Positions 13,083-39,595 of a DNA stretch of 64,000 nt are shown here, piece by piece. A model generated the notes under the pieces. That model saw nothing but the letters and a program-made list of their open reading frames with translations, did not search any database and was not told the DNA's origin. Each line of letters opens with the position of its first letter. Position 1 is the stretch's first letter. Location of the stretch: positions 1 to 64,000 of the IMG/VR virus record IMGVR_UViG_3300017971_000001; one strand, written 5' to 3'. The position numbers were made by a program, and so were the translations under genes.

Positions 13083-13265
13083 GTGAGGCGGCGCAGCCAG
13101 AGTCTGAAGAGAAAGCTGATCAACGCTCGCCGAGTCGTCATGACTCCAGAGCAGCGTGAGCGGCAGCGCCGCGCCTTCGCCTACGGGAACGCCAAGCTAT
13201 CGGACCCAGGCCTGACTCGCGCAGACGTCGAGCGCATTGCCGATCAACTCAAGGAGGGCCTGTGA
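13083..13265 (+). CDS. Small basic hypothetical protein
   Basis: AGGAGG RBS; coupled to the next gene. Confidence 0.55.
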   Translation: MRRRSQSLKRKLINARRVVMTPEQRERQRRAFAYGNAKLSDPGLTRADVERIADQLKEGL

Positions 13266-14113
13266 GCCACTTCGAGTTCAACAAGATCCGGATCGCCCCC
13301 TCGCCCCACTACGAGGGAATGACGCCGGTTGAGCGCAAGCTCCTGCACGAGCGATTGGTCAAGGCCATGGGGACCGCCAGAGCTCGAGCCTATCTGGACG
13401 GGGCGGCCAAGCGCTACCAGGCGATCATGCGCAACTACCACGGCGTCGACACCGGAATGTCTGGCATGGGCCAGTTCCAGCGTCGGCAGCTGTATCGCGA
13501 TCGCTACGGCAGGCTCCGCCAGCGTTCGGCGGGCTTGGACTACGGCCGCCTGACCCGCTCGCCTGTTCAATACGGCGACAACCGCCTCCTCCGCCAGCAG
13601 TGGTCCTACCAGCGAGGCACGAGTTCGGAGGACCGCTCCTCCTACGAGCGACTCCGCCGCGCCCAGGAAGCGGAGCGCCAGGCGGGCGTGTTCGGCCCCG
13701 CGCGCCAGGCGGGCACAAACCTGAACAAGTGGAAGAGCTACGAGCAGGCCCGCCAGCGCTACGAGCAGCGCCGCAAGCAGCAGGCGCAGCAGAAGGCTCA
13801 ACAGCAGAAGGTTCAGCAGCAACGGAAGCAGCAGCAACAGAAGCAGCAAAAGAAGGCTGCTGAGGAGGCCAAGAAGCAGCAAGGCTTTAAGGCTCCTTCC
13901 TGGGGCGCTTCGGATCGTCCTAAGGTCTACACGCCGCCGGCTGGGTCGAACCTAATCGCTCAGATTCAGGCCAGGGGCCGCGGCGGTTACAGGGGCCCGA
14001 CGCGAGGCGTGCTGCGCTCGAGCGGGCCTCCTTCGAGCGGGGGTGGGACCTACTACGCGCTCAGCGGGCTGGGCGACCTCGGGTGCTGCGGCGGCTGCAC
14101 GGGCCTTGGCTGA
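13262..14113 (+). CDS. Gln/Arg-rich protein with GMG/GLG motifs and a Cys/Gly C-terminus
   Basis: QQKAQQQK tract; MSGMG; ends LSGLGDLGCCGGCTGLG. Confidence 0.65.
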   Translation: MSHFEFNKIRIAPSPHYEGMTPVERKLLHERLVKAMGTARARAYLDGAAKRYQAIMRNYHGVDTGMSGMGQFQRRQLYRDRYGRLRQRSAGLDYGRLTRSPVQYGDNRLLRQQWSYQRGTSSEDRSSYERLRRAQEAERQAGVFGPARQAGTNLNKWKSYEQARQRYEQRRKQQAQQKAQQQKVQQQRKQQQQKQQKKAAEEAKKQQGFKAPSWGASDRPKVYTPPAGSNLIAQIQARGRGGYRGPTRGVLRSSGPPSSGGGTYYALSGLGDLGCCGGCTGLG

Positions 14114-14155
14114 GGCGGCGGATACTACTAGCCGCCCGTGAGGCGGTTCTTACCT

Positions 14156-14311
14156 ATGAAGAATTTCCACCTGCCTTCTTTCCTGCTCGGTCTCGGCGCG
14201 TTCGTCGCTGTGAGTTACGTTGCTCATTGCTATTTCGACCTAGGCCCTTGGCCTTGTCAGAGTGCTGATCCGCGCCACCTCGGAAACCTCAAGAAGATTC
14301 GCGCTGCGTGA
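14156..14311 (+). CDS. Small membrane protein (51 aa, not in the ORF track)
   Basis: MKNFHLPSFLLGLGAFVAVSYV...; its TGA overlaps the GTG at 14308. Confidence 0.55.
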   Translation: MKNFHLPSFLLGLGAFVAVSYVAHCYFDLGPWPCQSADPRHLGNLKKIRAA

Positions 14312-15024
14312 AGGTCTATCAAACTCACCCGACGATCGACGCCGCCGAGGTCTTGCCGAACCTGTGGATCGGCAGCCAGGCGCCTACTGGATCCGCGCTT
14401 CGCGACGGAGGGTTCGACGTCCTCGTCTTGTGCGCGGAAGAGTGGCAGCCCGCGGCCAGCAAGTTCAAGGGGATCCGCGTCCACCACGCCCCCTTTGACG
14501 ACGATTCGGAGGGCATGACCCAAGGAGAGCTCGACACGGCCGCTACGGCGGCGTTCGAGACGCTGCGGCACCTCAGGAAGGGCCGCCGGGTCCTGGTGAC
14601 CTGTTGGGCCGGACGGAATCGATCGGGACTCGTGACGGCCTGGGCGCTGTCCATGTACACCGGACTCGATCCCGCGCTCGCCGGCGAGGCGGTGCGCGAG
14701 GCGCGTGGGAGCGCCGCGTTGACGAACCCGCACTTCGTGGACGTGCTCAACCAGCTGCGCGAGGACGACTGCCAGCTTTGCGAGGCCGAAGAGATCACGC
14801 GTCGCTATCACGAGGACTCTCTCTGCTGGGTCGCAGACTGCGCGACCTGCGGGGTTCCTATGGTCGTGCTGCGCCGTCATTCGACGCAGCCAACTCGGCG
14901 CGAGGTCGCGCACATGCTCGACATGCTGCAGCTGTGCTGCCCACCGCACAAGAAGGGATATTCGATCGACCTCGAGCGTCGCTCGATCCCGGATCACTGG
15001 CACTGCCACGCGAGGCCCAAGTGA
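14308..15024 (+). CDS. Dual-specificity (CX5R) phosphatase fused to a HIT-like domain
   Basis: LWIGS, PFDD, VLVTCWAGRNRSG; C-terminal CxxC..CxxC and HWHCH. Confidence 0.85.
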   Translation: MKVYQTHPTIDAAEVLPNLWIGSQAPTGSALRDGGFDVLVLCAEEWQPAASKFKGIRVHHAPFDDDSEGMTQGELDTAATAAFETLRHLRKGRRVLVTCWAGRNRSGLVTAWALSMYTGLDPALAGEAVREARGSAALTNPHFVDVLNQLREDDCQLCEAEEITRRYHEDSLCWVADCATCGVPMVVLRRHSTQPTRREVAHMLDMLQLCCPPHKKGYSIDLERRSIPDHWHCHARPK

Positions 15025-16172: not shown

Positions 16173-16453
16173 TCGTCCGGCGTCGAGTCGTTACCTGCGG
16201 ACCCGAGGCCCTGCTCGAGTCTCTGGACCGTGGGAACCGGGTGGTCGAGCGCCAGGTGATCTCGGATCACGAGGCGCGCCAGCTGGTCGAAGAGGGCATG
16301 GTGAGCGACCTGGGCATGATCCACCCTCTGCACCCCATGCACCCGCACCGTAATGGCGTTCCGGCCATGCACGGCCTGGGCGAGTCCGAGGACTACACGC
16401 CCGTCTGGATCATGGGCGCGCTGGGCTTGGCGGTTCTTTACCTGCTCAGCTAG
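16169..16453 (+). CDS. Small C-terminally anchored membrane protein
   Basis: MHGLG followed by the hydrophobic tail VWIMGALGLAVLYLLS. Confidence 0.6.
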   Translation: MIVRRRVVTCGPEALLESLDRGNRVVERQVISDHEARQLVEEGMVSDLGMIHPLHPMHPHRNGVPAMHGLGESEDYTPVWIMGALGLAVLYLLS

Positions 16454-20602: not shown

Positions 20603-21301
20603 CTAACCTCTGCTCCGCCAGGTTAGATAGTGAATGGGGTCCTCCTCGAATCCAGAGCTCAAGAGTCCTGCGAAGTCGCCGGCGCTTTCCGCAAGTTCCT
20701 GCACGGTTTTCACGTGCTGCTCCGCTGCCTCCCTTTGCGCGGATACGAACGCGTCCGCCACGATCTCGAAGGTGTCTTCGTCACGCTCTCCGTCTTCGCC
20801 GATTGCCCAGATCGCGGTCTCCATTCGCTCGAAGCTGTAAGGGGGTCGATAGACGCTTCCGTGAAGGGCTTTGACCGCAATGGTGTTGACGACCCACGAT
20901 TCAGCGTCGTGGAAGTTGACCGTTGTCCGGACAGCCGGAAAGGTCATGAAGCCCTCCTCCATGAGGGCGTATTGCACGCTGAACATGAGCACGATCAAGT
21001 CGACGTTCAGCGGGTCCAGCCTTAGTGCCTGCCGCATGGTTCGGTGGGCCTGAACGAACAGGCGATCGGCTTGATCTCTATCTCCACCCCATTCCAGGTT
21101 CCGCGGCCCGCTGCCGCTACCCCATTCCAGATTCCGCTCAATCGAGCGCGCGAGCTCGAGTTCAAGCCATGAGAGCCTGCCGAGCTCCTCTGCTGTTGCG
21201 TCCTGGGTCCGATCGCGCCGGTCACGCAGATAGGCCAACTCGGCGTCCGGGTCACCTGCTTGCGCGGCTCGGTGAAGCTCTCGTTGCCGACGATCGCTCA
21301 T
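20603..21301 (-). CDS. SD-R-tag protein
   Basis: ATGA-coupled start; MSDRRQRELHRAAQAGDPDA. Confidence 0.75.
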   Translation of the reverse strand: MSDRRQRELHRAAQAGDPDAELAYLRDRRDRTQDATAEELGRLSWLELELARSIERNLEWGSGSGPRNLEWGGDRDQADRLFVQAHRTMRQALRLDPLNVDLIVLMFSVQYALMEEGFMTFPAVRTTVNFHDAESWVVNTIAVKALHGSVYRPPYSFERMETAIWAIGEDGERDEDTFEIVADAFVSAQREAAEQHVKTVQELAESAGDFAGLLSSGFEEDPIHYLTWRSRG

Positions 21302-22080
21302 GCCAACTCCAGCAGCCAGGGAATGAGGGTCTGGCGCATGGGCCGAAGAGTGAGTTCGAGCGAGTCCTCCTCGCTGTAACCGCCCTCCATGTTGTATGAC
21401 TCGTAGGTGTTCACCAGGAATCGATTGAACCCGTCGAAGCGCACGTCGCGGCCTCGTGAAACCTCGTAGGTGTCCCGAGCGCACGCGATCAGCCAGATCA
21501 ACGGACGCTGGATCGCAAAGAAGCTCTCGGCGTAGTCGACCCGCCGAGCTTCGGCTGAAGGGTCGTGAATGACCATGTCGCCAATGTCCTGGCCGAGGAG
21601 TCGAACGCGATCGCGGTGATACCTCTGTTCGATCGCGGTGACCTCCCATGGGCTTGAGACAGGCTGACCCGGACGTGCTGCACGCCGCGCCGCCACGACG
21701 ACGCTATCTGGAACGTCGTCGCCGAATCTGAGCCACGGCTCTTTAGCCTCAGCGACCGGAGCCCAAAAGTAGTCGACCAGGGCGGCGCAGGAGTTTGCGC
21801 ACGCCTCCAGCATGCGCTTCATGAACTGAACGTCGCTGGTCCCCAGGCCCTGCATTTCGAAGTAGAGGGCGGCAGTGATCCCCGAGAGCATGTCTCTTGG
21901 CTCGAGGTTCGGCAGGCCGCGAATCTCGACGAGGGCTGGTTCGAGCAGATTCCAGAGCACGGCGATCCGGGTGTTGGAGTAGATCCCCTGCCGCAGCGCT
22001 TCGGCCATGTAGGCGCGCTGGACGTCCGGGTCGCCCTCCAGATACAGGCGGCCGAGCTCTCGGAGTCTGCGGTCGCTCAC
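21298..22080 (-). CDS. SD-R-tag protein
   Basis: GTGA-coupled start; MSDRRLRELGRLYLEGDPDV. Confidence 0.75.
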   Translation of the reverse strand: MSDRRLRELGRLYLEGDPDVQRAYMAEALRQGIYSNTRIAVLWNLLEPALVEIRGLPNLEPRDMLSGITAALYFEMQGLGTSDVQFMKRMLEACANSCAALVDYFWAPVAEAKEPWLRFGDDVPDSVVVAARRAARPGQPVSSPWEVTAIEQRYHRDRVRLLGQDIGDMVIHDPSAEARRVDYAESFFAIQRPLIWLIACARDTYEVSRGRDVRFDGFNRFLVNTYESYNMEGGYSEEDSLELTLRPMRQTLIPWLLELA

Positions 22081-23243: not shown

Positions 23244-23725
23244 GGGAATCGCTCTCGTCCAAAGCCGCCCAGGTCGCGCCGGACCTGGTCGGGAAGCACT
23301 TCGCCCACGCTGCCGCGGAGCGTTCGCTGCAAGCCCTCTGCGTCTTCGTAGAGCACCATGGCAGTCGTCGGGGTCTCGTTGTGGTCCATGCCTGAGTCCC
23401 AGAACCGGAACAGCGCGTATTGCAGGACCGGCGCCCCGGCGGCGCGCGAGAACATAGCGAGCTCGCTGTGCGGGACGACTCCGTATTCTCCCAGCGAGGA
23501 CAGGTGGATCCGAATGAAGTCTCCGGATCCCGCGGAAGCCGAGATCAGCTGAACGTCTCGCTCCAGGCGGTTCAGCGGCCGCGGCGGGAGGAGTCCGCGG
23601 ACGCGCGCGATCTCGAGTTCTCGTTCGGCCTCAGCGTCTCCCGAAGCCGCGGCGCGCTGAAGGCGCTGCAGGCGCTCGTCAGCGTTTCTTCGAACGCTTC
23701 TTCGTTGCCTTCTTCTTGGTCGCAC
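23240..23725 (-). CDS. Tag-family protein; start uncertain and overlapping the upstream gene tail
   Basis: GTG-RPRRRQRRSVRRNADERLQRLQRAAASGDAEA. Confidence 0.55.
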   Translation of the reverse strand: MRPRRRQRRSVRRNADERLQRLQRAAASGDAEAERELEIARVRGLLPPRPLNRLERDVQLISASAGSGDFIRIHLSSLGEYGVVPHSELAMFSRAAGAPVLQYALFRFWDSGMDHNETPTTAMVLYEDAEGLQRTLRGSVGEVLPDQVRRDLGGFGRERFP

Positions 23726-25685
23726 GCTTCTTCTTCGCCTTCTTCTTGACGGCCTTCTTCTTGGCGGGGCGCTTCTTCTTTGGAGGGCCGGTTTTCTTCT
23801 TCGGGCGCTTCGAATACTCTTCCTTCCATTCTCGCACTTCGTCGGCGTCGAACAGAAGAATCTCGCGCTCGCTTCCAGCGTGCTCGGGGACGCGATCGTG
23901 AGGAGCGCCCTTGCGAACCCAGGCATAGACCGTGACCGGAGAGACCCCCAGGGCTTCGGCGACCTCCTGTCGCGTCATGCGTCGGTGCCCACGCTGGGGC
24001 TCGATCTGGATCTTGTTCGAGCGAATGTATTCGCTGATCCACTTGGCCGAGGGGCCGAACCTCTCGGACGCCTCGTTGTAGGAGTGCCCAGCGCGGAGGT
24101 AGTCCACGATCTGCTCGTAGAGCTCAGGCCCGTAGCGAATATTCCCCTCCGAGCGCGCCTTGCGGCTCCGCTCCTTGTAGTCCTCGTACCACTCTCGAAC
24201 TTCGTCAGCGTTGAACAGTCGGATCACTCGGCCTGCGCTGTCCTCGCCAACAAGATCATGAGGGACGTCCGTTTTGCGGAGCCAGTGGTCAACCGTGCTG
24301 AGTCCGACGCCGAGCGCTTCGGCGAGCTCGCGCCGGATTAGGCCTCGGTGACCCTTCTGCCGAGCTCGGACCTTTTCCTCCCAGATTTCCTTGCGCCGCT
24401 GACTGGACTTCTCTCGCTGCCGCTGCAGGTATCCCTCGTGCCAGGTCAGGAACTCGTCCTTGTTCCAGACGAGGTCGTTCTTCCAGCGACCGTGGGGTGC
24501 TCCCTCCTCTCGCGCCAGGCCGCGCAGGTGAGACGGGCTCATGCCAAGCTCGTCAGAGAGATCTTCGGTGCTGTAGAGGCCGCGCTCTTCGAGATACCTT
24601 CGCCGGCGCTCGAATTCGCGCTCTGCCGTCGAGCGAGCCTGCTTGGCCTGATCGGCGCGGACGCGTTCGAGGTATTCGTCGTGCCAGGCAATGAGCTCGT
24701 CGGGATTCCAAAGGATCGCGTGCTTGAGTTTCTTGTGGGGAGCGCCGTGTTCTTTGGCGAGGATTCTCAGGTGTTCTTCGCTGATCCCTGCCAGGTCGGC
24801 CATTTCCCTGGTCCCGACGTAGCGCAGCGCGTAGTCAATCGTGACCTTTTTCAGGTTCTTTCGCCCCTGGAAAGTCCAGAACGCCTGTCCGTCAGCAATC
24901 GCTCGCTTGACGTATTCTTCGATCACCTTCTCCCCGAGCGCAGGGAAGTCTACGGCCAGCTGATTGATCGTGGCCGTCCCGTTGCGCGCCTCCAGCGCGT
25001 CAAGGATCTCCGCCATGACGTCGCTGTCCTCGGCAATGGCAGACTTTCCCTTCCGGCGAACCTCGGTCACCTCGCGCTCCTGGGCCTCCATTCGCTCCAT
25101 GAGGCCCGCGGCGTAAGAACTCTGTTCGAGGTGCTCCGTGCAGTACTTCTTGCCGTGACGGGTCGGCTCGCCGCAAATCGCACAGGGCGTAGGCTTCTTT
25201 CGCCCCGGCCCTCGATCGGCTCCGTAGCTCCGATCGACCGTGCGAGGGTTGACTCCAATCGGCGGCCCGCCAGCGTCCATGTCCGGTCCTTCGTAGGGTC
25301 GGCGCGCGTGCGGCAGCGAGAAGTAGAGGCGCTTGAGGAAGGGGCGCTTCTTGAGTCGGGCGCTGATCGCCTGCGCGGTTACGTCGTATCGGCGCGCAGC
25401 CTCGCTGATCGTCAGGCCGTTGTCAATGAGGTCTCGGAAGATCTGATCCCAGACGTGATCCGGCTGCGGCGGGTTGTCTTGCGGCAGGATCCGTACGACG
25501 TCGGGCGGAACAGAGAGCATGAGACTCCGGCCGTTGTCCCAGTCCACGTCGACCTGAGCGAAACCGCCGCGCCGCACGTCACCGACGATCCGCACGCCAC
25601 GAACGACGCCCCTTGTCCCAGGACGGATCGGGCAGGGATCGTCCATGAACACGAGCTCGATCCGGTCTCCAGCTTCAGGGGTCAT
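23679..25685 (-). CDS. DUF4314-like domain plus multiple winged-HTH repeats and a Lys-rich tail
   Basis: GDRIELVFMDDP...VDWDNGRSLML; CxxC..CxxH; four MerR/Nu1-like repeats (..LA..LG.S......W...G.PH.....F.....W); KKK tail. Confidence 0.75.
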   Translation of the reverse strand: MTPEAGDRIELVFMDDPCPIRPGTRGVVRGVRIVGDVRRGGFAQVDVDWDNGRSLMLSVPPDVVRILPQDNPPQPDHVWDQIFRDLIDNGLTISEAARRYDVTAQAISARLKKRPFLKRLYFSLPHARRPYEGPDMDAGGPPIGVNPRTVDRSYGADRGPGRKKPTPCAICGEPTRHGKKYCTEHLEQSSYAAGLMERMEAQEREVTEVRRKGKSAIAEDSDVMAEILDALEARNGTATINQLAVDFPALGEKVIEEYVKRAIADGQAFWTFQGRKNLKKVTIDYALRYVGTREMADLAGISEEHLRILAKEHGAPHKKLKHAILWNPDELIAWHDEYLERVRADQAKQARSTAEREFERRRRYLEERGLYSTEDLSDELGMSPSHLRGLAREEGAPHGRWKNDLVWNKDEFLTWHEGYLQRQREKSSQRRKEIWEEKVRARQKGHRGLIRRELAEALGVGLSTVDHWLRKTDVPHDLVGEDSAGRVIRLFNADEVREWYEDYKERSRKARSEGNIRYGPELYEQIVDYLRAGHSYNEASERFGPSAKWISEYIRSNKIQIEPQRGHRRMTRQEVAEALGVSPVTVYAWVRKGAPHDRVPEHAGSEREILLFDADEVREWKEEYSKRPKKKTGPPKKKRPAKKKAVKKKAKKKRATKKKATKKRSKKR

Positions 25686-29066: not shown

Positions 29067-30236
29067 TCAGATCTGCCCGTCCAGCCAGCGCATTCGGTCC
29101 CCGATCCCCAGCCCTTCGAGCGGCTCCTCGTAGGTCACCGTCTCGGGCAAGTAGTCCACGACGCGCGCGTAGTCCTTGCTGGTCAGGAAGATCAGGTGGA
29201 CGCGGTCCCCGTAGACCTTGAGGATCTCCTTCGCGACCCGCTTCGCCCATGCGCGCTTCGTGTCGATCTTGGCGCCGACGAGCGTTTCGTTGTAGGTCGG
29301 GATCTTCTTACGCCGCGGCGTGAGCCCGAACTTGGCCGACAGGATCGCCCAGTCGTCCGCCTCACCCTCGTCGATCAGGGCCTCGGCGTAACGGCGACTC
29401 TTGGTGAACAGCGGGCTGACGCTGTAGAGCTCCTGCGCCGCCACCTTCTTCCCGCGCTTGAGCGGGGCCTTGTTCTTCGTGCAGCCGATCAGCACGACGG
29501 ACTCGGCGCGACGGGGGTTGCTCTTCGGCCAAGTTCGGACTCTTTGAGCCAGCCATGCACGATACGCCTCTCGGATAAAGTCCAGTCGACTCGACCGACT
29601 CAGTGACCCCCACGACTTCCCGTCGAGTTCCGCGATCGCGTCGCCAGCGTGAGGCGCAGGGCCAATCGGCTCCGGTCCCACTCCGGACCGAAGATCCGGC
29701 TTCCGCTCCATTCCTTCGTAGGTCTCAACATAGGCCCGGCGCTCAGCGACGCTCATTCCTTCCCAGCGCTGCGAGAAGAGGCTCTCGTAGACCGGTTGGC
29801 GATCGTAGAGCCATAGGCGAGCGAAATGCATGGCTTGAGCGAGCTCGACCGGATCCGAGTAAATGATCTCCGCGCGGATCTCTTCCTGAATCTCCATTTC
29901 GTAGCGCTGGTCTCGCTCTTCGTAGCTGAGCACTCCTCCGTATCTCTTCAGAAGTCGATTGGCTTCGGCCTGAGTTGCCTCAAGGCTGCCGTCGTCCAGC
30001 GCGCCGGTGACCCGGTCACTCACGACGTCGTAGATCGCGTAATGATCTCCTTTGAGGACTCGCATGATTACCATGGGCCCGATCGCGTCCACGAACTCGA
30101 CGTTCTTGGCAGACTCGGCGCGCTTCCCTTCCGGGCTGAAGTGGTGCTGAGCCAAGATCCAGGCGTCTTCAGCCGTGATCTCCTCGCGCGGCTTCCGCAT
30201 GGCCGCGCGCAGCCGTCGGTCGAAACTCACGCCCAA
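29067..30236 (-). CDS. Unknown N-terminal domain, NP, DUF6884-like domain
   Basis: After KSNP: VVLIGCTKNK, AQELYS.SPLF, WAILSAKFGL, YNETL. Confidence 0.65.
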   Translation of the reverse strand: MGVSFDRRLRAAMRKPREEITAEDAWILAQHHFSPEGKRAESAKNVEFVDAIGPMVIMRVLKGDHYAIYDVVSDRVTGALDDGSLEATQAEANRLLKRYGGVLSYEERDQRYEMEIQEEIRAEIIYSDPVELAQAMHFARLWLYDRQPVYESLFSQRWEGMSVAERRAYVETYEGMERKPDLRSGVGPEPIGPAPHAGDAIAELDGKSWGSLSRSSRLDFIREAYRAWLAQRVRTWPKSNPRRAESVVLIGCTKNKAPLKRGKKVAAQELYSVSPLFTKSRRYAEALIDEGEADDWAILSAKFGLTPRRKKIPTYNETLVGAKIDTKRAWAKRVAKEILKVYGDRVHLIFLTSKDYARVVDYLPETVTYEEPLEGLGIGDRMRWLDGQI

Positions 30237-31042
30237 CCTCCGTGTTCGGCGCAGGCGAGGCTACCGTCTTCGTCCCAGCCGATCGCGACGTTCTCGCAGA
30301 AGTCGCACTCTTCGTCTTCCGGTTCAGGGAGTGGCCAGGGGTATTCGGCGTTGATTTCCAGTCCGCGCTCGCGGAGCTCGCGCGCGAAGGTCTCGTCCTC
30401 GTCGCGCCATTCTTCCAGGGTCCACTGTCGGCGTTGGTCGTCGGCGGTATCTGGGTCGAACCCCCACCACCGGATTTCGTCTGCGGGGGCAGGCAGGACT
30501 TGCGGGCTCCACCCGGATCGACTGCTCCCTTGGCAAACGGCGGTGTCCCCTACTTCCCGCGACGCTTCGTAGAGTAGCGCCGCCCTCGTTAGCAGGCCTC
30601 CCTCCATGAACGTCTCGGAGAAATCTTCCTGACAAGAGTTCGAGAAGTGCTCGATTGCTTGCCTCGTCTGCTCGTCCGCGAGGGTCAGCGCCGAAAGGTC
30701 GACCGACCAGTCGTCGATCCAGAAGGGGTAGCCCGGGTCTTGATACCCGTTGTCTCCGATAAGGTCAACGACGTTCTCAATCCTCAGGATCTCTGCGTAC
30801 GAAGATCCGGGTTCCACGCGAGCGAGCACGGCGCCGTGGCTCGTGGCCGACATGTCTCCGCCGATCTGGGTCCAGCGCTCCTCTTCCGGGTCATAGCCAA
30901 CCGGCGGGAGCCCGGCTTCGATCCGCTGGATCTCAATGCCGAGCGGGTCTGTCCGGCGGAGGAGCCGGCGTAGTGCCTCCATGGCGTCCGGGTCACCCAA
31001 GGCGGCCAGTCGTTGAAGTTCTCGAATCTCCTCGTCGCTCAC
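30227..31042 (-). CDS. SD-R-tag protein with a C-terminal CxxC..CxxH
   Basis: MSDEEIRELQRLAALGDPDA. Confidence 0.75.
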   Translation of the reverse strand: MSDEEIRELQRLAALGDPDAMEALRRLLRRTDPLGIEIQRIEAGLPPVGYDPEEERWTQIGGDMSATSHGAVLARVEPGSSYAEILRIENVVDLIGDNGYQDPGYPFWIDDWSVDLSALTLADEQTRQAIEHFSNSCQEDFSETFMEGGLLTRAALLYEASREVGDTAVCQGSSRSGWSPQVLPAPADEIRWWGFDPDTADDQRRQWTLEEWRDEDETFARELRERGLEINAEYPWPLPEPEDEECDFCENVAIGWDEDGSLACAEHGGWA

Positions 31043-32862
31043 TTCAGATCCTCAACAAAGGAACTCGGCACGTCGTAAGCCCAGAAGAGGTGCTGGAGCC
31101 CCAAGGGCGCGCTGAATTTGATCACAAGGTCAGACGGCTCGCCACTTTCTTCTTCGCCCTCGACCTCGAAGTCCGTCTCGAAATACTCTGCCTCGAATTC
31201 AGCTGAAATCGACGCCGAGGCGAGATCAGCGAGCTCTTCGTTCGACAGGTTCACCTGCGCGTCGAGTTCGCCCGCAATGAGTTCGATATCGTTGTCGGAA
31301 AGATCCAGCCCGCTGATATCGAGGTAGGCCTCAATGTGGATCTCTAAGCTCGCTCCAGGACGAGGCGGGTATCGATCCGGTCTGACGGAAATGTTCATGC
31401 CGTTGAGGCGGTGGGGACCGACCTCGGGGGGAATGTAGGGGCTCTCGAGGATTGAGAGCACGGCGGATTCAAAGTATCTGTAGATCTCTGGGTCCAGCGT
31501 GCTGCTGTAGGCGGCCGTGAGCTCAGGGCGCCAATGAAGGAAGTCTTCTTCCAGCCCTCGGCGAGTCCTTGCCCTCGTTCCCGTACCCAGGGCCTCGCGA
31601 ACAGCCTCTGCGTCTCCGTCGAGAATGTTGCTCCAGGCGTTCTGGTAGGCCGCGATCGCGCCGGTCGATCGGCGCCGGCGTAGTTCCCGCTCGAGCGCCT
31701 CTTCGGCGTCGACGTCGCCCGCGGCGGCGCGCCGGCGGAGTTCGAGCTCGCGATCCTCGGGGGAGGGGTTCCTTCGATACTTCCTCTTCACGTAGACAGG
31801 CTCCTCGGTGAGGAGTTCAAGGTTTTTGTTGTGGTGTCTCGCTAGTTCGCGCTCGAACTCGCAGTCCGGGTCGTCGAAGTCTGGATCGGCGCAGTCGGAA
31901 TCGATCCAGTCGTATTCCTTCCAGCCCTTCCAGTAGCGACGCGCCGCTTCACGCACGCCAGGTTCGTAGAGCGCGACGTCGCGGGGGTCGTCGATCCTCA
32001 CCGAGCGCATATAAGGCGCAGACGAAGCGAGACCGCTGATATGCCCGCCTGCGTCGTTGAAGTGGTCCATGTCGAACTTGTGAACCGGGCCCTTGGTGCG
32101 GACTTCGTAGATCCCAGCTTCTCCGGCGGGGCAGCGTGGCATGTATTGCCCTGGGCTCGGGCTCACGAACACGCTGCGGATCCGGCTCGGCATTCCGGCA
32201 GGGCGCTCCTCCTCGAACACGCGCTCGACGAACTGCTTGTGGGGCGTCAGGTCGTCCCAGGGCTTGGGGCGGAGTCGCTGGTTCGGTTTGAGCTCGGCGC
32301 ACGAGGAGTGGTAGTAGGGCGGGTTCCGCAAGTAGCCTGCCCAGCGCGCCTCTTGCCGCAGGTCGAGCTCTTCGACCAGCCCGAGAAACCGATTCACGTT
32401 CTCGCGTCGCTGGGGGTTGGGGGCCAGGTCCTCAAGAGCAGCGCGGAATTGGCATGCGCTAGGCTCTCCCGCGGCCAGGATCTCGTAACGAGTGCTCAGT
32501 GGCTCAATGTCCGAGAACCATTCCCAGTCCTCAAGGATCCATTCGTAGGCTTCTGGATCGTGAGACTGATCGATCAAGCTCTGCGCGATCACGGAGTACA
32601 TGATCTGGAAGGGGAGGTCTGCGAGCGACCCTTCGAGGTTTTCGATCCGGGCCCAGATCACCGACTCTGCAAACGCGAAGTGCCAGGTGCTATACGAGAT
32701 CCGCGCGGGCAGCATGTAGCGCTGCCCGATCTCCTGGGCGCGATAGAGCTCCCCTCTCAAGCGATCAGCCGCGTCCGGGTCGAACGCGGCTTCACGGGCG
32801 AGTCGTCGCAGGTCTCGGTCTGAAGGGTTCCGCCGGGGCCGGCGGGCGCGCCGGCTCGCCAT
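31039..32862 (-). CDS. Modular protein with two tags and a central ADP-ribosyltransferase-like (DUF2441-like) domain
   Basis: RRNPSDRDLRRLA...; YYH, ERVFEEERP, PSRIRSVF, IYEV, YWKG, ELL; RRNPSPEDRELELRRRAAAGD. Confidence 0.7.
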   Translation of the reverse strand: MASRRARRPRRNPSDRDLRRLAREAAFDPDAADRLRGELYRAQEIGQRYMLPARISYSTWHFAFAESVIWARIENLEGSLADLPFQIMYSVIAQSLIDQSHDPEAYEWILEDWEWFSDIEPLSTRYEILAAGEPSACQFRAALEDLAPNPQRRENVNRFLGLVEELDLRQEARWAGYLRNPPYYHSSCAELKPNQRLRPKPWDDLTPHKQFVERVFEEERPAGMPSRIRSVFVSPSPGQYMPRCPAGEAGIYEVRTKGPVHKFDMDHFNDAGGHISGLASSAPYMRSVRIDDPRDVALYEPGVREAARRYWKGWKEYDWIDSDCADPDFDDPDCEFERELARHHNKNLELLTEEPVYVKRKYRRNPSPEDRELELRRRAAAGDVDAEEALERELRRRRSTGAIAAYQNAWSNILDGDAEAVREALGTGTRARTRRGLEEDFLHWRPELTAAYSSTLDPEIYRYFESAVLSILESPYIPPEVGPHRLNGMNISVRPDRYPPRPGASLEIHIEAYLDISGLDLSDNDIELIAGELDAQVNLSNEELADLASASISAEFEAEYFETDFEVEGEEESGEPSDLVIKFSAPLGLQHLFWAYDVPSSFVEDLK

Positions 32863-32864
32863 GA

Positions 32865-34184
32865 CTAGAAGGTCTCGACGGACGTTCCGGGCAGCGGGAA
32901 CGAGCCCGAGTAGGGGTTGTAGGCCGGCGGCTGTGCGACCGAGACTCCTTGACCGGGCTGGGAGACGAAGCCGGGCGAACCGAAGATCGCCATGGGAACC
33001 TGGTAGGGCTGAGCCTGAATCGCAGTCTGCTGCGCCAGCCAGTACTGGTAGGCCTGGTTAGGATCGACGCCGTAGGGGCCGAGGGTCGGGTGGCTGTAGA
33101 AGGCCGGCAGGCTGGTGCGGCCCTGGACGAAGCTCGACTCGACCAGCGCCTTGTCAGGGGCCTTGTACTGGATACAGGTTCCCGTGTCGGCGTCGCAGAT
33201 CTTCGGGAGCGTGATCCGACGCTCAATGAAGCTGGTCGCCAGCTGGCTGTCGGGGCTGTTGTAGGTCAGGCGTCCCATGCCGAGGTCGAAGCGCTCGTTC
33301 TTGCCGGCGATCTTGCTGGCGCTCTCGCGGTACTTGGCGGGGACCTGGTCCGGGGCGAGGAACGTCCCCTGCGCGTAGTCGGGCGAGGCCTTGGGCAGCG
33401 CGCCCATGCCGAACAGCTGACGGTGACGCATGAGCGCCTTGCTGCTCATGAGCTCGCGCTTGGGCACCTGACGGGGCGAGAGGTAGGTGCCCTGGCCGTA
33501 GTCTGGACTCGCCTTGGGCAGCGCACCCATGCCGAACATTTGCCGGTGCTTGATCAGCTGGCGCGCGCTCATGCGAGTCGCGGCCGCGGCCTGCCGAGGC
33601 GAGAGGTAGGTCCCCTGCGCGTAGTCAGGACTCGCCGGCATGGCGCCCATGAACCGCTCGGGCGCGTTGTAGAGCTTCTTGTCGCTCATGCGGTACTTTT
33701 TGGGCACCTGGCGCGGCGAGAGATAGGTCCCCTGCGCGTAGTCGGGCGAGGCCTTGGGCAGCGCGCCCATGCCGAACATTTGGTGAGCGCGCATGAGCTC
33801 GCGATCGCTCATTCGCTCCCAGCCCGGCACCTGACCCGGCGAGAGGTAGGTCCCCTGTGCGTAGTCAGGCGCGCCCTTGAGCGAGAACGACTCACGCGAC
33901 TGCGCGACCTTGTTCGTCGGCACGATATCGCGAACGATCCCCGCCTCCGGGGAGAGCCAGTTGCCCTGGCCAGCCGTTCCGCCCATAGCGAGGCGCCGGC
34001 GAGACGCTCGAGCGGCAGCCCACTGGCGGCGCTCGGCGGCTCCGGGGGCAGAAGGACTCGTGTTAGGAACGCGCAGGTACATGACAACCTCCAGCTGGAG
34101 CTTTCTTTCAGTGTCGCCGGGATCTCGACCCCTGCCACCTCGAATCCTGACAACCGAAACCGACTCCTGCGTCTCGAATGGCAC
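32865..34184 (-). CDS. Repeat protein with five ~40-aa units
   Basis: PDYAQGTYLSP.QV......MS...L......FGMGALPK repeats; start codon uncertain. Confidence 0.7.
   Translation of the reverse strand: MPFETQESVSVVRIRGGRGRDPGDTERKLQLEVVMYLRVPNTSPSAPGAAERRQWAAARASRRRLAMGGTAGQGNWLSPEAGIVRDIVPTNKVAQSRESFSLKGAPDYAQGTYLSPGQVPGWERMSDRELMRAHQMFGMGALPKASPDYAQGTYLSPRQVPKKYRMSDKKLYNAPERFMGAMPASPDYAQGTYLSPRQAAAATRMSARQLIKHRQMFGMGALPKASPDYGQGTYLSPRQVPKRELMSSKALMRHRQLFGMGALPKASPDYAQGTFLAPDQVPAKYRESASKIAGKNERFDLGMGRLTYNSPDSQLATSFIERRITLPKICDADTGTCIQYKAPDKALVESSFVQGRTSLPAFYSHPTLGPYGVDPNQAYQYWLAQQTAIQAQPYQVPMAIFGSPGFVSQPGQGVSVAQPPAYNPYSGSFPLPGTSVETF
33270..33875 (-). repeat. Five imperfect ~120-bp tandem coding repeats
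   Basis: Recurring plus-strand cccatgccgaaca and gtcccctgcgcgtagtc segments; boundaries approximate. Confidence 0.85.
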
Positions 34185-34186
34185 AG

Positions 34187-34273
34187 CGCGGGGTCAACTA
34201 GTCAGGTCCATGTTCTCGGGCTCATAACCCGAGGGGGCGAAAGCCCCACGCAGGTTCGAATCCTGCCCCGCTA
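34187..34273 (+). tRNA. Initiator-type tRNA-Met(CAT) with an atypical long variable arm
   Basis: CGCGGGG/CCCCGCT+A acceptor with C1:U72 mismatch; anticodon arm TCGGG-CTCATAA-CCCGA; GGTTCGAATCC T-arm; extra GGGGC-GAAA-GCCCC arm; no encoded CCA. Confidence 0.8.
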
Positions 34274-35140
34274 TCAGACCGAGCGGAAGTAGACCGTGGC
34301 GGTCATGCCCTGACTCGCGGCGCCAGCGGTGTAGTTCACGCGCAGGCTCTGGGCCGCCGTGAACGCGACGTTATCCACGAAACCGACGTCGCCGCTCGCG
34401 AACACCCCTGAGTTGCTGAGCGTCATTTGCGTGACGCCGTTTCGCTGGATCTGAACGGTACCCGCGCCCGAGGCGAAGTTGAGCGCGATCGCAAGGATCT
34501 CGGCGTCGCGGGGGACGATATAGTCCGTCTCGACGCCCGGCGTGTTCGTTCCGATCACTGAGGCGTCGCCGTTGACGAACGCCAGCGGCTGCGTCGTGAT
34601 CGTCAATTCTCCGCCGAGGTTGGCGCAGAAGCTGTCGAGCGAGGACAGCGAAGCAATGTCCGCTGTGTTCTGGGTAATGTCTGCGCGGTTCTCGTTCAGC
34701 GCCGCGATTAGCGAGGCCGCGCCGGCGAACCCCGACAAGTTCAGATTGCTTCCGTCATTGAAGGGGAGTTGCTGACCTCGAGCTCCGAGAACCAGGTCCT
34801 GCGCGGCGCCGGCGAGAACCTGCAGAACGGCGTTCCCGCCGCCGTTCCCGATCTGGATCAGGGTCGCGGCGACGTCTGCCCACAGCTGGCGCGACGTCAG
34901 CGATCCTTCGATCCGACTGAGGAGTGCCTCGTCGAGCGTTTCGTTGAACTTGCGGGCGTCGGCGCCGTCGCCCGCGGCGAGCATGATTCGTTGCACGGTT
35001 ACCACCTGGAGAATGGTCATGACGACCGGGCCAACAAACCGATCGGGAAGAACGTTCAGCGCGCTCTGCGTCGCCGGGCCGACGTAGCGGTCGGGGAGGA
35101 CTGAGAGTCCGCGTTGGGCTGCTGGTCCGACGAAGGTCAT
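34274..35140 (-). CDS. Putative structural protein (N-terminal short repeat, coiled coil, beta-sandwich C-terminus)
   Basis: FVGPA.Q..L.VLPD repeated two to three times; beta-rich C-terminus. Confidence 0.6.
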   Translation of the reverse strand: MTFVGPAAQRGLSVLPDRYVGPATQSALNVLPDRFVGPVVMTILQVVTVQRIMLAAGDGADARKFNETLDEALLSRIEGSLTSRQLWADVAATLIQIGNGGGNAVLQVLAGAAQDLVLGARGQQLPFNDGSNLNLSGFAGAASLIAALNENRADITQNTADIASLSSLDSFCANLGGELTITTQPLAFVNGDASVIGTNTPGVETDYIVPRDAEILAIALNFASGAGTVQIQRNGVTQMTLSNSGVFASGDVGFVDNVAFTAAQSLRVNYTAGAASQGMTATVYFRSV

Positions 35141-37413: not shown

Positions 37414-37543
37414 TCCAACTGACGCAGCAGTCCGATCAGATAGTCCGGCGGAACCGGCCCCGTCTGGAGGCGGCAGTGTTGTAGGCGCTGGATCAGCAGC
37501 AGAAGCACGTGAGCGGAGCAGGGGCACATACTGACTCCCAGTG

Positions 37544-37558
37544 TACAGTGGAACCATG
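37544..37558 (+). promoter_or_regulatory. Leaderless-type -10 element TACAGT-ggaacc-ATG
   Basis: Same geometry as at seven other starts. Confidence 0.55.
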
Positions 37559-37741
37559 ATCCGGATCGTAGGTTTCACGCACGGCCGCGGGCTGGGCGAT
37601 CAGTTCCCCAGTGAGCCCGAGCGGCTCTTCGCCCCGCCGACCGCGGGCCAGAAGCAGTTCGGCGAGCTCTTGATTGCTGCGACCGGGCTTATGCTGCTCT
37701 GGATCGTGGCCGGCGCGCCTGGCGTGCCCGCCAAGGGGTGA
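37556..37741 (+). CDS. Small protein with GLG and a C-terminal TM segment
   Basis: GRGLGD; LLIAATGLMLLWIVAG. Confidence 0.55.
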   Translation: MIRIVGFTHGRGLGDQFPSEPERLFAPPTAGQKQFGELLIAATGLMLLWIVAGAPGVPAKG

Positions 37742-37745
37742 TCGC

Positions 37746-39026
37746 ATGAGCCTGCGGAAGTTGAGGTACGAGCCTAACCCTCCCGCGCCCTTCTTGGTCA
37801 AGAAGGCGACGCGCGACAAGATCCTTGGCCTCTACGACAGCTGGCTGACCGAGGTTTGGCTCGAGCTCCCGCGCACGCGCGCCGGCAAGGCAAGCCCACC
37901 CATGCTGCTCTTCGCCCCTGAGCTCTACAGCGAGGATTTCGCTGAAGCCGGAATCGAGGGAATGTATAGCTCGGTGCTGGCGGAGCACCTCAAGCCTCAC
38001 CACCGCGTTGTGGGCGAGCCGCGGGTGAACCGTGAGACGGGGGCCGTCTACTACCGGATCGGCGGCATGTACAAGGGCGCCTCGTTCTTCAGCAACACGA
38101 GCAAAATGAGTTGCCCGTCCTGGTCGGTTCCGGCGGGCCCGCCGATCATTGGCGGGTCGTGCCCTGGCGCAGGGCCTATGCTCGAGACGCCAGATCAGCA
38201 ACGCCGGGCCTCGATTCAACAAATCGAACGTCAGATCGCGCTGGGGATCGAGTCCGGGCGGCTCGATATGAGCGAGCCTCTGAAGGTCCGCGGGCGCCGC
38301 CTTCCGTCCGCCGACGCCGGCCCTGGCGAGCTAAAGCAGTTCGTCTGCGATATCTGCTACGCCGGCAAGGCGAACTACGGCAACGCCTCCACCCAGGCTT
38401 GGCAGATTCTCCGCTTCGAGTGGTTCAAGCGCTGGGAGCGGAAGGATCCGGCCGAGCTCGTGCGCCAGCTGGTGCTCGCGATCAACCACATGCGCGAATA
38501 CCTGCTGACCTATCACTCCAAGTCGAAGAAGAATCCGATCGATCGCGCCGGCCGCAAGATCGGCGTGAAGCACGAAGTCTGGAGCCAGGTAGACCCCAAC
38601 TTCTTTCGGATCTACGACTCGGGCGACTACCACAGTGTCACAGCCGTTCGCGTCTGGAACGAGGTCGCCAAGCGGGTTCCCGAGGTGCTGTTCTGGGCGC
38701 CGACTCGCATGTGGTGGAGCGAGAAGTTTCGGCGCGAAATGGCAAAGGCGCCCAAGAACCTCGCGATCCGCCCGAGCGCACTTCATACAGAAGACCCTCC
38801 CCCGAGGGTCAAGGGTCTCGCCGGCGGCTCCGGCGTCAGCAGCGACGATTCGTCCTGGTTGTGCCCGGTCTATACCGGTCAGGCTCGCACATGTTGGAAG
38901 GCAAGGCGGCCTAAGGGGAAGACGCTCAAGCCGGGCGGCAAGGAGCACTGCCGCGTCTGCTGGGGCGGGTTCAAACCCGGCAAGCTCCCCTACAAGCAGA
39001 CTACGGTCAGCTATCACGCCCACTAG
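37746..39026 (+). CDS. GP88-like (gene product 88) Cys-rich protein
   Basis: SKMSCPSWSVPA, SCPG, CDICYA, FRIYDSGD, FWAPTR, CxxC C-terminus. Confidence 0.7.
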   Translation: MSLRKLRYEPNPPAPFLVKKATRDKILGLYDSWLTEVWLELPRTRAGKASPPMLLFAPELYSEDFAEAGIEGMYSSVLAEHLKPHHRVVGEPRVNRETGAVYYRIGGMYKGASFFSNTSKMSCPSWSVPAGPPIIGGSCPGAGPMLETPDQQRRASIQQIERQIALGIESGRLDMSEPLKVRGRRLPSADAGPGELKQFVCDICYAGKANYGNASTQAWQILRFEWFKRWERKDPAELVRQLVLAINHMREYLLTYHSKSKKNPIDRAGRKIGVKHEVWSQVDPNFFRIYDSGDYHSVTAVRVWNEVAKRVPEVLFWAPTRMWWSEKFRREMAKAPKNLAIRPSALHTEDPPPRVKGLAGGSGVSSDDSSWLCPVYTGQARTCWKARRPKGKTLKPGGKEHCRVCWGGFKPGKLPYKQTTVSYHAH

Positions 39027-39034
39027 GAGTCCTC

Positions 39035-39595
39035 ATGAGCATGTTGACGCTGGAGGGCCTCGGTAACCCGCCGCGCGAACCGAAGTCCGAAGAACTTTTC
39101 TGGCGAGACGTGCGCTCGGCCTGGCACCGGCGCGGACTTCCGCTCGCGCCTTGGAGTCGGACAACTCGGGAGACGGAGGCCGCGGCTCGCTATCGAGCTC
39201 GATACGCCGACGAGCTCCGCGCGCGTCGCATGCGGCAGGCGGCTGAGAATCAGCGGCGCCGGCAGATCCTCGCTCAGCAGCGCGCTCGGGCTCAGAGCCA
39301 GAACTCAGCGGCGAAGCGAGTTCAGCGGCGCGAGCCGGTGATCGCCAATTGGCGCGAGGAGCAGGATCGGCGCCGGGCGCAAGACGAGTTACTGGCGCGC
39401 CAGCGAGCTCGCTCCGTCGCAAGGACTGGCCTCGTTTCAGCCCAGGCCAGAGAGAGGGCTGCGGCCAAGCGGACGCCGCCCCCCTTGATCGCCCGCCCGA
39501 CCCGTCAGGCGAGCATGCCCCGCTCAGGTGGTTATCTGAGCTTCAGCACGCCGACCGTCTCCTACCAACCCCAGACCCATATCCTGCTGCGCTAA
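39035..39595 (+). CDS. Arg/Gln-rich basic coiled-coil protein
   Basis: AGGAG RBS; LEGLGNP near the N-terminus. Confidence 0.65.
   Translation: MSMLTLEGLGNPPREPKSEELFWRDVRSAWHRRGLPLAPWSRTTRETEAAARYRARYADELRARRMRQAAENQRRRQILAQQRARAQSQNSAAKRVQRREPVIANWREEQDRRRAQDELLARQRARSVARTGLVSAQARERAAAKRTPPPLIARPTRQASMPRSGGYLSFSTPTVSYQPQTHILLR

Follow-up and report, generated by a model that had tools for sequence, protein, structure and literature searches.

Gene content of the window and carriers of the motif

The window analysed here comprises the first 64 kb, about a quarter, of a complete 245,276-bp genome of a prokaryotic virus, for which we called 354 genes (g1–g354). It encodes collagen-repeat fibre proteins, a patatin-like phospholipase, very basic proteins and small hydrophobic proteins, among which the pentapeptide (M/L)-x-G-(M/L)-G recurs (Table 1). 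A preliminary description made from the sequence alone had listed this motif in five open reading frames, with a related RGLG in a sixth, and every listed occurrence was confirmed by translation. Five further instances in the window, in g27, g37, g51, g64 and g65, had not been listed. The description of the carriers as basic or membrane-anchored holds for several of them, including g12, g18 and g47, but not for all. The least convincing instance is that of g13, which lies inside a hydrophobic segment.

Table 1. Features of the window, and two protease-like genes elsewhere in the genome (genome coordinates)
Coordinates	Strand	Gene	Product	Motif and position	Supporting evidence
26..736	+	g1	236 aa, pI 12.0, Lys-rich; candidate DNA-condensing core protein at the far end of the virion module that wraps round from 208-245 kb	none
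1265..6225	+		Two collagen-repeat fibre proteins (1265-3478, 737 aa; 3490-6225, 911 aa)		PHROGs collagen-like tail-fibre families down to E = 1e-123, resting on the collagen repeats; blastn hits likewise confined to collagen repeats
11148..12038	+		Patatin-like phospholipase		PF01734, 67.7 bits; orthologs in both relatives at 54% and 38% identity
13262..14113	+	g12	283 aa, pI 10.7, Arg/Gln/Lys-rich, low complexity	MSGMG (aa 66; 13457-13471); LSGLG (aa 267; 14060-14074), 17 residues from the C-terminus	no BLASTP homolog in the two relatives
14156..14311	+	g13	51 aa, small hydrophobic protein	LLGLG (14183-14197), inside the hydrophobic segment
16169..16453	+	g18	94 aa	MHGLG (16367-16381), just before a C-terminal hydrophobic anchor
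21298..22080	-	g27	260 aa, acidic	MQGLG (21841-21855)
29067..30230	-	g37	387 aa, DUF6884 C-terminal domain	LEGLG (29106-29120), 17 residues from the C-terminus	LAGLG at the same position in the ortholog of the 190-kb relative
32865..34184	-	g40	405-439 aa, pI 9.9; tandem repeats of about 40 aa, each ending in Q-(M/L)-F-G-M-G-A-L-P-K, then a conserved C-terminal domain	MFGMG twice and LFGMG (33765-33779, 33525-33539, 33402-33416)	five homologs keep G(M/L)G at the repeat ends; ortholog c66_130
37556..37741	+	g45	61 aa, hydrophobic segment at aa 34-52	RGLG at aa 11-14, partial; does not meet the full pattern
39035..39595	+	g47	186 aa, pI 11.8, Arg/Gln-rich; N-terminal leader MSMLT-LEGLG, of the MSxL(T)(L/M)..G(L/M)G type seen in the virion module	LEGLG (39050-39064)
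41667..42938	+	g51	423 aa	LCGMG (42240-42254), internal
49364..49810	+	g64	148 aa, acidic	LEGMG (49640-49654)
49807..50706	+	g65	299 aa	LQGMG (50191-50205)
174444-175190		g270	Papain-family C1 protease		PF00112, 23.1 bits
212676-213452		g319	Transglutaminase/papain-fold Cys-His-Asp protein		PF01841, 23.5 bits

Enrichment, distribution and conservation of the motif

Across the gene calls of the whole genome, [ML]xG[ML]G occurs 30 times against 5.3±2.2 in within-protein shuffles, and none of 200 shuffles reached 30. The same excess was observed in relatives, with 25 instances against 4.6±2.0 in a complete 190-kb relative, 12 against 3.0±1.7 in a 94-kb relative, and 14 against 0.5 and 12 against 0.8 in the 20-kb virion loci of two further relatives. 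The four fixed positions depend on one another, Met being enriched 8.5x at position 4 and 6.1x at position 1, and Gly 3.6x at position 3 and 3.4x at position 5, while synonymous codons vary freely, indicating that selection acts on the peptide and not on a DNA motif. A compositional effect could be envisaged given that the genome is 63% GC and Gly-rich and that two other reading frames also give 10-11 matches. However, this reading is effectively refuted by the shuffles, which keep composition and never approach the observed counts in any of the five genomes or loci, as well as by the mutual dependence of positions and the conservation of sites in orthologs.

Of the 30 instances, 27 lie in 41% of the proteome (202-245 kb plus 1-51 kb; binomial p = 4e-8), that is, in the two virion-type regions. 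Sites also cluster near protein termini, with 42 of 67 pooled instances lying within 35 residues of the N-terminus or 60 of the C-terminus against 30.0±3.3 expected (1 of 5000), although our gene starts are heuristic and motifs placed at residue 1 are accordingly uncertain. The motif is kept at orthologous sites within divergent flanks in g37, g320 (two sites, of which FDPxxE-(L/M)FG(M/L)G is present in five genomes), g324, g327, g329, g332, g336, the C-termini of g339 and g340, and g341. This evidence does not cover several carriers in the window (g12, g13, g18 and g47), which have no detectable homologs, and some instances internal to folded, conserved regions, such as LLGLG in g354, may be structural.

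In g329 and g320, compared with c66_29 and c66_39, respectively, sequence conservation begins right after the motif whereas the upstream leader differs in length. Enrichment, clustering and conservation would fit any selected linear motif equally well, including one that is not cut but recruits proteins to the assembling capsid, membrane or scaffold, or that serves as a flexible Gly hinge recognised by a partner, and the N-terminal leader consensus resembles capsid-targeting sequences. We consider this alternative doubtful because the motif occurs at N-terminal ends, at C-terminal ends and at repeat boundaries, and because leaders upstream of it vary in length or are missing while conservation starts right after it, which is the pattern of removed propeptides. 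In T4 and adenovirus, targeting leaders are also cleaved.

Predicted double-jelly-roll proteins and absence of recognisable tailed-phage genes

No HK97 capsid, terminase, portal, sheath, tube, baseplate or tape-measure family was found in Pfam or PHROGs for any ORF of at least 125 aa, nor in six-frame scans. Instead, two paralogous proteins encoded outside the window, g339 and g340, are predicted to fold as double jelly rolls (DJR; AF2 model, pLDDT 74.9). In a search of 48,161 representative PDB chains the g340 family model matched only DJR proteins at Z >= 8, the best match being the STIV major capsid protein (Z 11.1), followed by GH172 (11.0-10.3), PRD1 (9.5), PM2 (9.3), PBCV-1 (9.3), EhV-201 (8.8) and faustovirus (8.3); values across comparisons were 9.5-10.0 for PRD1 P3, 9.3-9.5 for PM2 and 9.2-9.3 for PBCV-1. 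The nearest ESM Atlas structures are viral clusters, with TM up to 0.88. The two genes sit in a module full of small tail-anchored membrane proteins and proteins of pI 10-12. As GH172 shows, DJR folds also occur in cellular enzymes, so that a capsid role rests on context; no single-jelly-roll penton was identified, and no FtsK/HerA or A32 packaging ATPase, a hallmark of DJR viruses, was recognised.

It is possible that the element is instead a very divergent tailed jumbo phage or a megaplasmid whose HK97 capsid, terminase and portal escape detection, and whose DJR proteins are fibre or glycan-binding components. Look-alike clusters in IMG/VR are labelled Uroviricota, collagen-like 'tail fibre' proteins are present, GH172 enzymes match g340 as well as capsids do, the DJR genes lie next to fibre-like genes, and a DJR-type packaging ATPase was not found. 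We regard this as unlikely, since the absence of all these families would be unprecedented for a 245-kb tailed phage, the Uroviricota labels are automatic, and the top unbiased structural match is a capsid protein.

Gene organisation is prokaryotic, with 111 four-base gene overlaps, SD-like sites before 248 of 353 genes, and a tmRNA. The predicted DJR protein, with Z 8-11 to their capsid proteins, the many small membrane proteins in the structural module, the fibre or spike genes next to the capsid genes and the lack of tail genes are shared with membrane-containing DJR viruses of prokaryotes (PRD1/Tectiviridae, PM2/Corticoviridae, STIV/Turriviridae, phiCjT23, FLiP). In contrast to the 7-18 kb genomes of the prokaryotic DJR viruses surveyed previously (PMC5894146), however, the genomes here are of 190-245 kb, with two DJR paralogs, no recognisable FtsK/HerA ATPase, and a putative maturation protease and basic core proteins, features otherwise seen in adenoviruses and giant eukaryotic viruses. 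With Nucleocytoviricota the virus shares a large genome, the DJR fold, collagen-like proteins, patatin, a dual-specificity phosphatase and a cysteine-protease maturation theme (here inferred), but it differs in its prokaryotic gene organisation, its tmRNA, its bacterial-type HTH, pilin, Mom and RusA genes, and in the absence of an A32 ATPase, a Ulp1 protease and any NCLDV capsid family hit in Pfam.

A candidate maturation protease and the inferred role of the motif

The preliminary description had related the motif to the adenovirus protease consensus, inferring core or membrane precursors processed at maturation, and had raised the possibility of a large membrane-containing DJR bacterial virus, while noting that neither an adenain-type protease nor a capsid gene was seen in the window. 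This interpretation is partly supported, in that the motif and the virus type hold but the adenain link does not. The finding set beforehand as contradicting it, namely HK97 capsid, terminase and portal genes together with a motif not conserved in homologs, was borne out on neither count. The motif formally fits the type-1 adenain site (M/I/L)xGx-G (hydrophobic P4, Gly P2, Gly P1'), and, as for the adenain (MEROPS C5) substrates, the core and cement precursors pVI, pVII, pVIII, pIIIa, pX and pTP, carriers include very basic, DNA-condensing-type and membrane- or capsid-associated proteins with sites near the N- and C-termini, in a virus with a predicted DJR capsid protein. However, profiles of adenain (PF00770) and Ulp1 (PF02902) gave nothing at E <= 10 in any of the six frames, the wider adenain patterns are not enriched or barely so ([MIL]xGxG, 86 against 69.5; the type-2 pattern [MIL]xGGx, 70 against 68.9), position 4 is restricted to M/L (with F enriched 2.4x), the host is prokaryotic and the genome is about 7 times larger. 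The resemblance is formal or convergent and is not evidence of an adenain.

The only protease-like gene conserved across the lineage is g319, encoded at the head of the virion module next to scaffold-like coiled-coil proteins. Its 51 homologs (38-74% identity) lie on the same large contigs as the DJR gene, D167, C168, H203 and D222 are invariant, and the order Cys-His-Asp is of the transglutaminase/papain type and not His-before-Cys. In one relative a Hint/intein is inserted exactly before the catalytic Cys, and the synteny g316-g317-(g318)-g319-g320 is kept in four other contigs. The predicted fold matches transglutaminase-like proteases, LapG, PNGase and PeiW with Z 13.6-8.9. LapG/BTLCP and other transglutaminase-like cysteine proteases (PDB 4fgq, 3isr, 3kd4, CPR-C4) have the same fold and the same Cys-His-Asp triad as g319. 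LapG is a proven site-specific processing protease that cuts between two small residues, Ala108 and Ala109 of LapA (PMC3032545), although it is a periplasmic, calcium-dependent regulator of adhesins, sequence identity is about 15%, and no virion-maturation role is known to us for this fold.

The g319 fold is equally close to true transglutaminases (factor XIII, TG2; Z about 11), PNGase and the cell-wall isopeptidases PeiW/PeiP, so that it could be a cross-linker or a lysin, and a complex prediction of g319 with a substrate segment gave no verdict. The motif could instead be cut by a host protease, by g270, which has a clear papain signature, or by an undetected clan-CE (adenain-like) protease, as small divergent proteases can escape HMMs; in that case g319 would be a transglutaminase cross-linker or a cell-wall isopeptidase. 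We consider this possible but unlikely, given that g270 has no counterpart in the two relatives that share the motif enrichment, that the six-frame searches with the adenain and Ulp1 profiles gave nothing at E <= 10, and that g319 keeps its place in the virion module.

We posit that (M/L)-x-G-(M/L)-G, often preceded by Gly and followed by Ala, Asp or Ser, is a short linear processing signal on proteins destined for the virion, marking the end of short N-terminal leaders of the type MSxLT(L/M)..G(L/M)G, the start of short C-terminal tails and the boundaries between repeats, as in g40. In this view, which we hold to be somewhat more likely than not, the mechanism would be endoproteolytic trimming during particle maturation by a virus-encoded cysteine protease, for which g319 is the best candidate. 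What the analysis itself establishes is the enrichment, clustering, terminal bias and orthologous conservation of the motif, the (modelled) DJR fold of g339 and g340, the transglutaminase-type fold and invariant triad of g319, the absence of recognisable tailed-phage hallmark genes and the prokaryotic gene organisation; that the motif is cut, at which bond and by g319, that the DJR proteins form the capsid, and that there is an internal membrane are inferences from sequence and predicted structure. The arrangement recalls the prohead proteases of large tailed phages, T4 gp21 (which cuts after L/I-x-E and removes N-terminal capsid-targeting leaders) and phiKZ gp175 (S/A/G-x-E), in that a short degenerate motif recurs dozens of times in head, core and internal proteins, short leaders end in the site, and the protease gene lies in the morphogenesis module, but the motif, the protease fold (those enzymes are serine proteases of the herpesvirus-assemblin type) and the HK97 capsid lineage all differ. 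We thus hypothesise that the capsid is most likely built from DJR proteins around an internal membrane and a protein-condensed DNA core, and that the motif is most likely a maturation cleavage signal in a previously undescribed kind of giant tailless phage.

Genome organisation and motif distribution

The 245,276-bp IMG/VR virus record, of which the window forms the first quarter, is rated complete by CheckV and its two ends overlap by 123 bp. The genome has a GC content of 63% and carries five tRNAs and a full-length tmRNA. A codon-usage model trained on the genome's own long ORFs yielded 354 genes, the starts of which are heuristic. Gene organisation is prokaryotic: 111 same-strand neighbours overlap by 4 nt, and an SD-like site precedes 248 of 353 starts against 85 of 353 in a control window, although our gene caller gave a small bonus to such sites. 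Near-identical DNA was detected in sediment and seawater metagenome runs of three studies, some of which may be the source sample, and in no RNA run.

The observation made in the preliminary description holds, as translation of the ORFs recovered all of the motifs listed there, together with five more in the window. Genome-wide, [ML]xG[ML]G occurs 30 times against 5.3±2.2 in within-protein shuffles, and none of 200 shuffles reaches 30. The motif is thus about sixfold enriched, a subset of the type-1 adenain pattern with M/L at the fourth position, while the general adenain patterns are barely or not enriched ([MIL]xGxG, 86 vs 69.5; [MIL]xGGx, 70 vs 68.9). The positions are mutually dependent: given the other three positions, Met is 8.5x, Leu 2.5x and Phe 2.4x enriched at position 4, Met is 6.1x and Leu 2.4x enriched at position 1, and Gly is 3.6x enriched at position 3 and 3.4x at position 5. 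In addition, Gly is favoured just before the motif, Ser at the x position and Ala just after. Codons for the Gly and Leu positions vary freely, so selection acts on the peptide and a DNA-level motif was rejected. Of the 30 sites, 27 lie in two regions, 1-51 kb and 202-245 kb, which hold 41% of the residues (p = 4e-8), and 42 of 67 pooled sites lie near a protein end, against 30.0±3.3 expected. Combined with the conservation described below, we consider it virtually certain that the motif is a selected peptide signal.

Coordinates of features in the virus genome and in relatives (positions refer to the 245,276-bp genome unless stated otherwise)
Position	Strand	Feature	Observation
6228-7472		Tail-sheath hit	E = 0.003; no ortholog in the relatives; treated as noise
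14308-15024 and 8062-11113	+	Dual-specificity phosphatase-like protein (DSP), methyltransferase, 541-aa methyltransferase-glycosyltransferase fusion and sialyltransferase-like protein	All conserved in the 190-kb relative, in which the second DSP-like gene sits beside the inferred capsid genes
14060-14113	+	End of g12, a motif carrier	Ends in LSGLGDLGCCGGCTGLG, a Cys cluster right after the motif that could be a lipidation or metal site
23679-25715	-	Protein of 668-678 aa	Several helix-turn-helix units (HTH_17, 81 bits, plus many other HTH families) with an N-terminal DUF4314
29067-34184		Stretch with near-identical metagenomic DNA
34186-34275	+	tRNA-Met (CAT), 90 nt	Abuts the start of g40; Rfam score only just at the gathering threshold (29.7 bits); unusually long for a tRNA
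37746-39026	+	GP88-domain protein	PF17338, 66 bits; lies between two motif carriers
109300-109590		FtsK-type hit
113948-116032	-	TnpB/Cas12f-like protein	PF07282, 48.7 bits; PHROG 'transposase'; counterparts in all three genomes
about 120, 128 and 186 kb		Four tRNAs outside the window	The fifth tRNA is in the window
128146-128557	-	tmRNA	Rfam RF00023, 149 bits; ARAGORN tag ADQKAHLPTATSRA
167223-170627		UvrD-like helicase-nuclease
174444-175190	+	g270, papain-family (C1) cysteine protease	Clear Cys/His/Asn-Ser-Trp signature
228133-228771	+	g337, 212 aa
229357-230481, and locus L016:5350-6948	+ (genome)	Mom-like/HNH gene	Sits between g337 and the double-jelly-roll genes; in the 190-kb relative the same gene also carries a LAGLIDADG domain
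190-kb relative, 40398-42224	-	Ortholog of g319, the candidate protease

Predicted capsid lineage and conservation among relatives

To establish what kind of virus carries the motif we looked for the tailed-phage and double-jelly-roll (DJR) hallmark genes that the preliminary description had named as the deciding comparison. Pfam and PHROGs scans of every ORF of at least 125 aa found no terminase, portal, HK97 capsid, tube, baseplate or tape-measure protein, and six-frame scans with PF03237 and PF05065 were likewise negative. The only 'tail' signals are collagen repeats, the weak sheath hit, and matches to phrog_24134 and phrog_25379 ('virion structural' and 'tail protein'), both of which map to one 50-aa stretch of g349 and say little. 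Inspection of the 207-245 kb block revealed a plus-strand module comprising, in order, coiled-coil, scaffold-like proteins (g316-g318), a transglutaminase-like protein (g319), a run of small proteins with C-terminal membrane anchors (g320-g331), four proteins of pI 10-12 (g333-g336), a highly conserved 212-aa protein (g337), two beta-rich paralogs (g339 and g340) and acidic fibre-like proteins (g342-g351). The run of small tail-anchored proteins and a conserved patatin phospholipase lend only indirect support to an internal lipid membrane.

The beta-rich protein g340 has 40 homologs, all unannotated, on contigs up to 190 kb. An AlphaFold2 model built from 37 sequences (pLDDT 74.9, pTM 0.72) was compared with 48,161 representative PDB chains, and the best match is the STIV major capsid protein (Z 11.1, 233 residues, 4.3 Å), followed by GH172/DUF2961 enzymes (11.0-10.3), PRD1 P3 (9.5), PM2 P2 (9.3), PBCV-1 (9.3), EhV-201 (8.8), faustovirus (8.3) and phiCjT23 (8.2). 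Over all comparisons made, Z ranged from 9.5 to 10.0 for PRD1, 9.3 to 9.5 for PM2 and 9.2 to 9.3 for PBCV-1. All 12 chains with Z >= 8 are double jelly rolls, and the nearest ESM Atlas structures are viral clusters with TM by target up to 0.88. A Foldseek search of BFVD gave a noisy list for g340, in which jelly-roll domains of tail fibres rank among capsids, and we therefore relied on the VIA-align searches. The fold is thus established at the level of a predicted model, while the capsid role is inferred from the context and from the lack of any alternative capsid gene; on this basis a DJR-based capsid appears probable.

A packaging ATPase of the DJR type was not recognised. A scan with the A32 ATPase profile (PF04665) gave no match in six frames, and the FtsK profile (PF01580) gave only an 11.7-bit hit that was rejected because the aligned profile region does not fit the position of the P-loop. 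The only canonical Walker A in the genome is in the UvrD-like helicase-nuclease, and no packaging ATPase of any known type, whether terminase, FtsK/HerA or A32, was recognised. For the single-jelly-roll penton, comparisons at the profile level only, namely hhalign of the candidates g337 and g341 against the DJR family and a g337 profile against PDB, returned no similarity. g337 is the most conserved protein of the lineage, with 88.6% and 58% identity to the two relatives while most other proteins are at 30-55%, and has 86 clusters of homologs in 1.84 billion representatives but no Pfam, PDB or profile match. ESM Atlas feature searches gave unnamed viral clusters at 0.97 and no family for g337, and only unnamed viral clusters below 0.9 for g336 and g316. 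Pfam tallies further revealed accessory genes that are unusual for a DJR virus, including GroES, a type IV pilin-like protein with an N-methylation motif, HiPIP, a 2OG-Fe(II) oxygenase, Fe/Mn superoxide dismutase, DHFR, three DNA methyltransferases, a tyrosine integrase, RusA, PTH2 and cpYpsA.

A search for related loci with g336 found no relatives, and one with the g340 alignment found only one IMG/VR relative. The g340 homolog P0016 lies on a 190,544-bp contig with its own 143-bp end overlap (JAJDAN010000066.1), from a MAG labelled Deltaproteobacteria bacterium OFTM107, and a 94-kb IMG/VR fragment is a more distant relative. A total of 111 proteins of the present genome have BLASTP matches in these two, and the virion module is syntenic. 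The motif is enriched in both (25 vs 4.6±2.0 and 12 vs 3.0±1.7), and about 20-fold in the 20-kb virion loci of two further contigs of 126 kb and 102 kb (14 vs 0.5 and 12 vs 0.8).

In alignments the motif stays put while the flanks change. The window protein g37 has LEGLG and its ortholog LAGLG, each about 17-20 residues from the C-terminus, and both sites of g320 are kept, the second of which, FDPxxE-(L/M)FG(M/L)G, is present in all five genomes. The motif is also kept in g324, g327, g329, g332, g336, g341 and the C-terminal tails of the DJR proteins. In g329 and g320, conservation starts immediately after the motif and the upstream leader varies in length or is absent, which is what removal of a propeptide predicts. 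Within the window, g40 consists of repeats of about 40 residues that end in Q(M/L)FGMGALPK, and five homologs keep G(M/L)G at the repeat ends. The carriers g12, g13, g18 and g47 have no detectable homologs, so their sites rest on the genome-wide statistics only.

A candidate processing enzyme

Adenain (PF00770) and Ulp1 (PF02902) gave no match at E <= 10 in six-frame profile scans, and no such family appeared in the Pfam scans of ORFs. The best candidate is instead g319 (258 aa), which reaches the Pfam cut-off for Transglut_core (PF01841, 23.5 bits against a cut-off of 23). Its 51 homologs are 38-74% identical, which is more conserved than the DJR protein, and lie on the same large contigs. 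D167, C168, H203 and D222 are invariant, the Cys-His-Asp triad in 38 sequences, and the order g316-g317-(g318)-g319-g320 is kept in four other contigs. The g319 model (pLDDT 81.7) matches the putative proteases 3kd4 (Z 13.6) and 3isr (11.6), factor XIII and TG2/TG3 (about 11), PNGase (10.5), LapG (9.8), CPR-C4 (8.9) and PeiW/PeiP (8.9), indicating a predicted transglutaminase-core fold. LapG, of the same fold, is a proven site-specific protease that cuts LapA between Ala108 and Ala109 (PMC3032545). However, the fold alone cannot tell a protease from a cross-linking transglutaminase or a cell-wall isopeptidase, and a complex prediction of g319 (65-258) with g320 (440-490) scored 0.00, which is not evidence either way.

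In the 190-kb relative the g319 ortholog is interrupted exactly before the catalytic Cys by an insert of about 350 residues, which begins with Cys, ends in His-Gln followed by the Cys, and gives weak Hint-domain hits at its first residues (Hint_2/Vint, aa 196-265, E about 1e-3). This is an intein at the active site. The papain-family protease g270 was rejected as the shared enzyme because it is absent from both relatives.

Proposed maturation model and its implications

We propose that virion-bound proteins carry (M/L)xG(M/L)G at the end of short N-terminal leaders, before short C-terminal tails or between repeats, and that the putative g319 cysteine protease would trim these sites during or after assembly, as adenain, T4 gp21 and phiKZ gp175 do in their virions. 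That the motif is a cleavage site appears likely, and, given cleavage, it is somewhat more likely than not that g319 is the enzyme. The sequence data establish the enrichment and conservation of the motif and, at the level of models, the folds of g340 and g319, whereas cleavage, peptide-bond hydrolysis by g319, the capsid role of the DJR proteins, the membrane and the particle shape are inferred without wet-lab evidence, and the host assignment rests on binning and on gene organisation. The preliminary description had matched the motif to the adenovirus protease consensus and inferred core or membrane precursors processed at maturation, and had raised the possibility of a large membrane-containing DJR bacterial virus. 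That interpretation is supported in part, as the link to an adenain is not borne out.

The proposed system works like the adenovirus maturation system but is not a member of it, since the defining protease was not found in profile scans and the type-2 site is not enriched. The virus shares the predicted DJR fold with PRD1, PM2 and STIV, but its genome is more than ten times larger than the 7-18 kb reported for prokaryotic DJR viruses (PMC5894146), and the FtsK-type ATPase that defines that group was not recognised. Literature searches found no description of large prokaryotic DJR viruses, although their coverage was incomplete and prior description cannot be excluded. It is possible, if somewhat less likely than not, that these genomes represent a previously undescribed lineage of giant (190-245 kb) tailless, membrane-containing DJR-capsid viruses of bacteria, occurring in marine sediment and seawater, with one complete genome binned with a 'Deltaproteobacteria' MAG. 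In this view the lineage would have independently evolved an adenovirus-like maturation programme, comprising basic core proteins, membrane proteins and capsid proteins carrying (M/L)xG(M/L)G sites and a dedicated protease recruited from the transglutaminase fold, and would package its DNA without any recognisable FtsK-type or terminase-type ATPase.

The motif offers a concrete handle on such viruses, as it predicts which of the roughly 350 unknown proteins are virion components and where their mature ends lie, and nominates one enzyme. A transglutaminase-fold maturation protease with an adenain-like site preference would be a clear case of convergent specificity, and the missing packaging ATPase points to either a very divergent motor or a different packaging mode. 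Prokaryotic DJR viruses are known as some of the smallest dsDNA viruses, and gigantism in this capsid lineage has been tied to eukaryotic hosts. A 190-245 kb DJR virus with prokaryotic gene organisation would show that large genomes, protein-condensed cores and protease-driven maturation also arose on the bacterial side.
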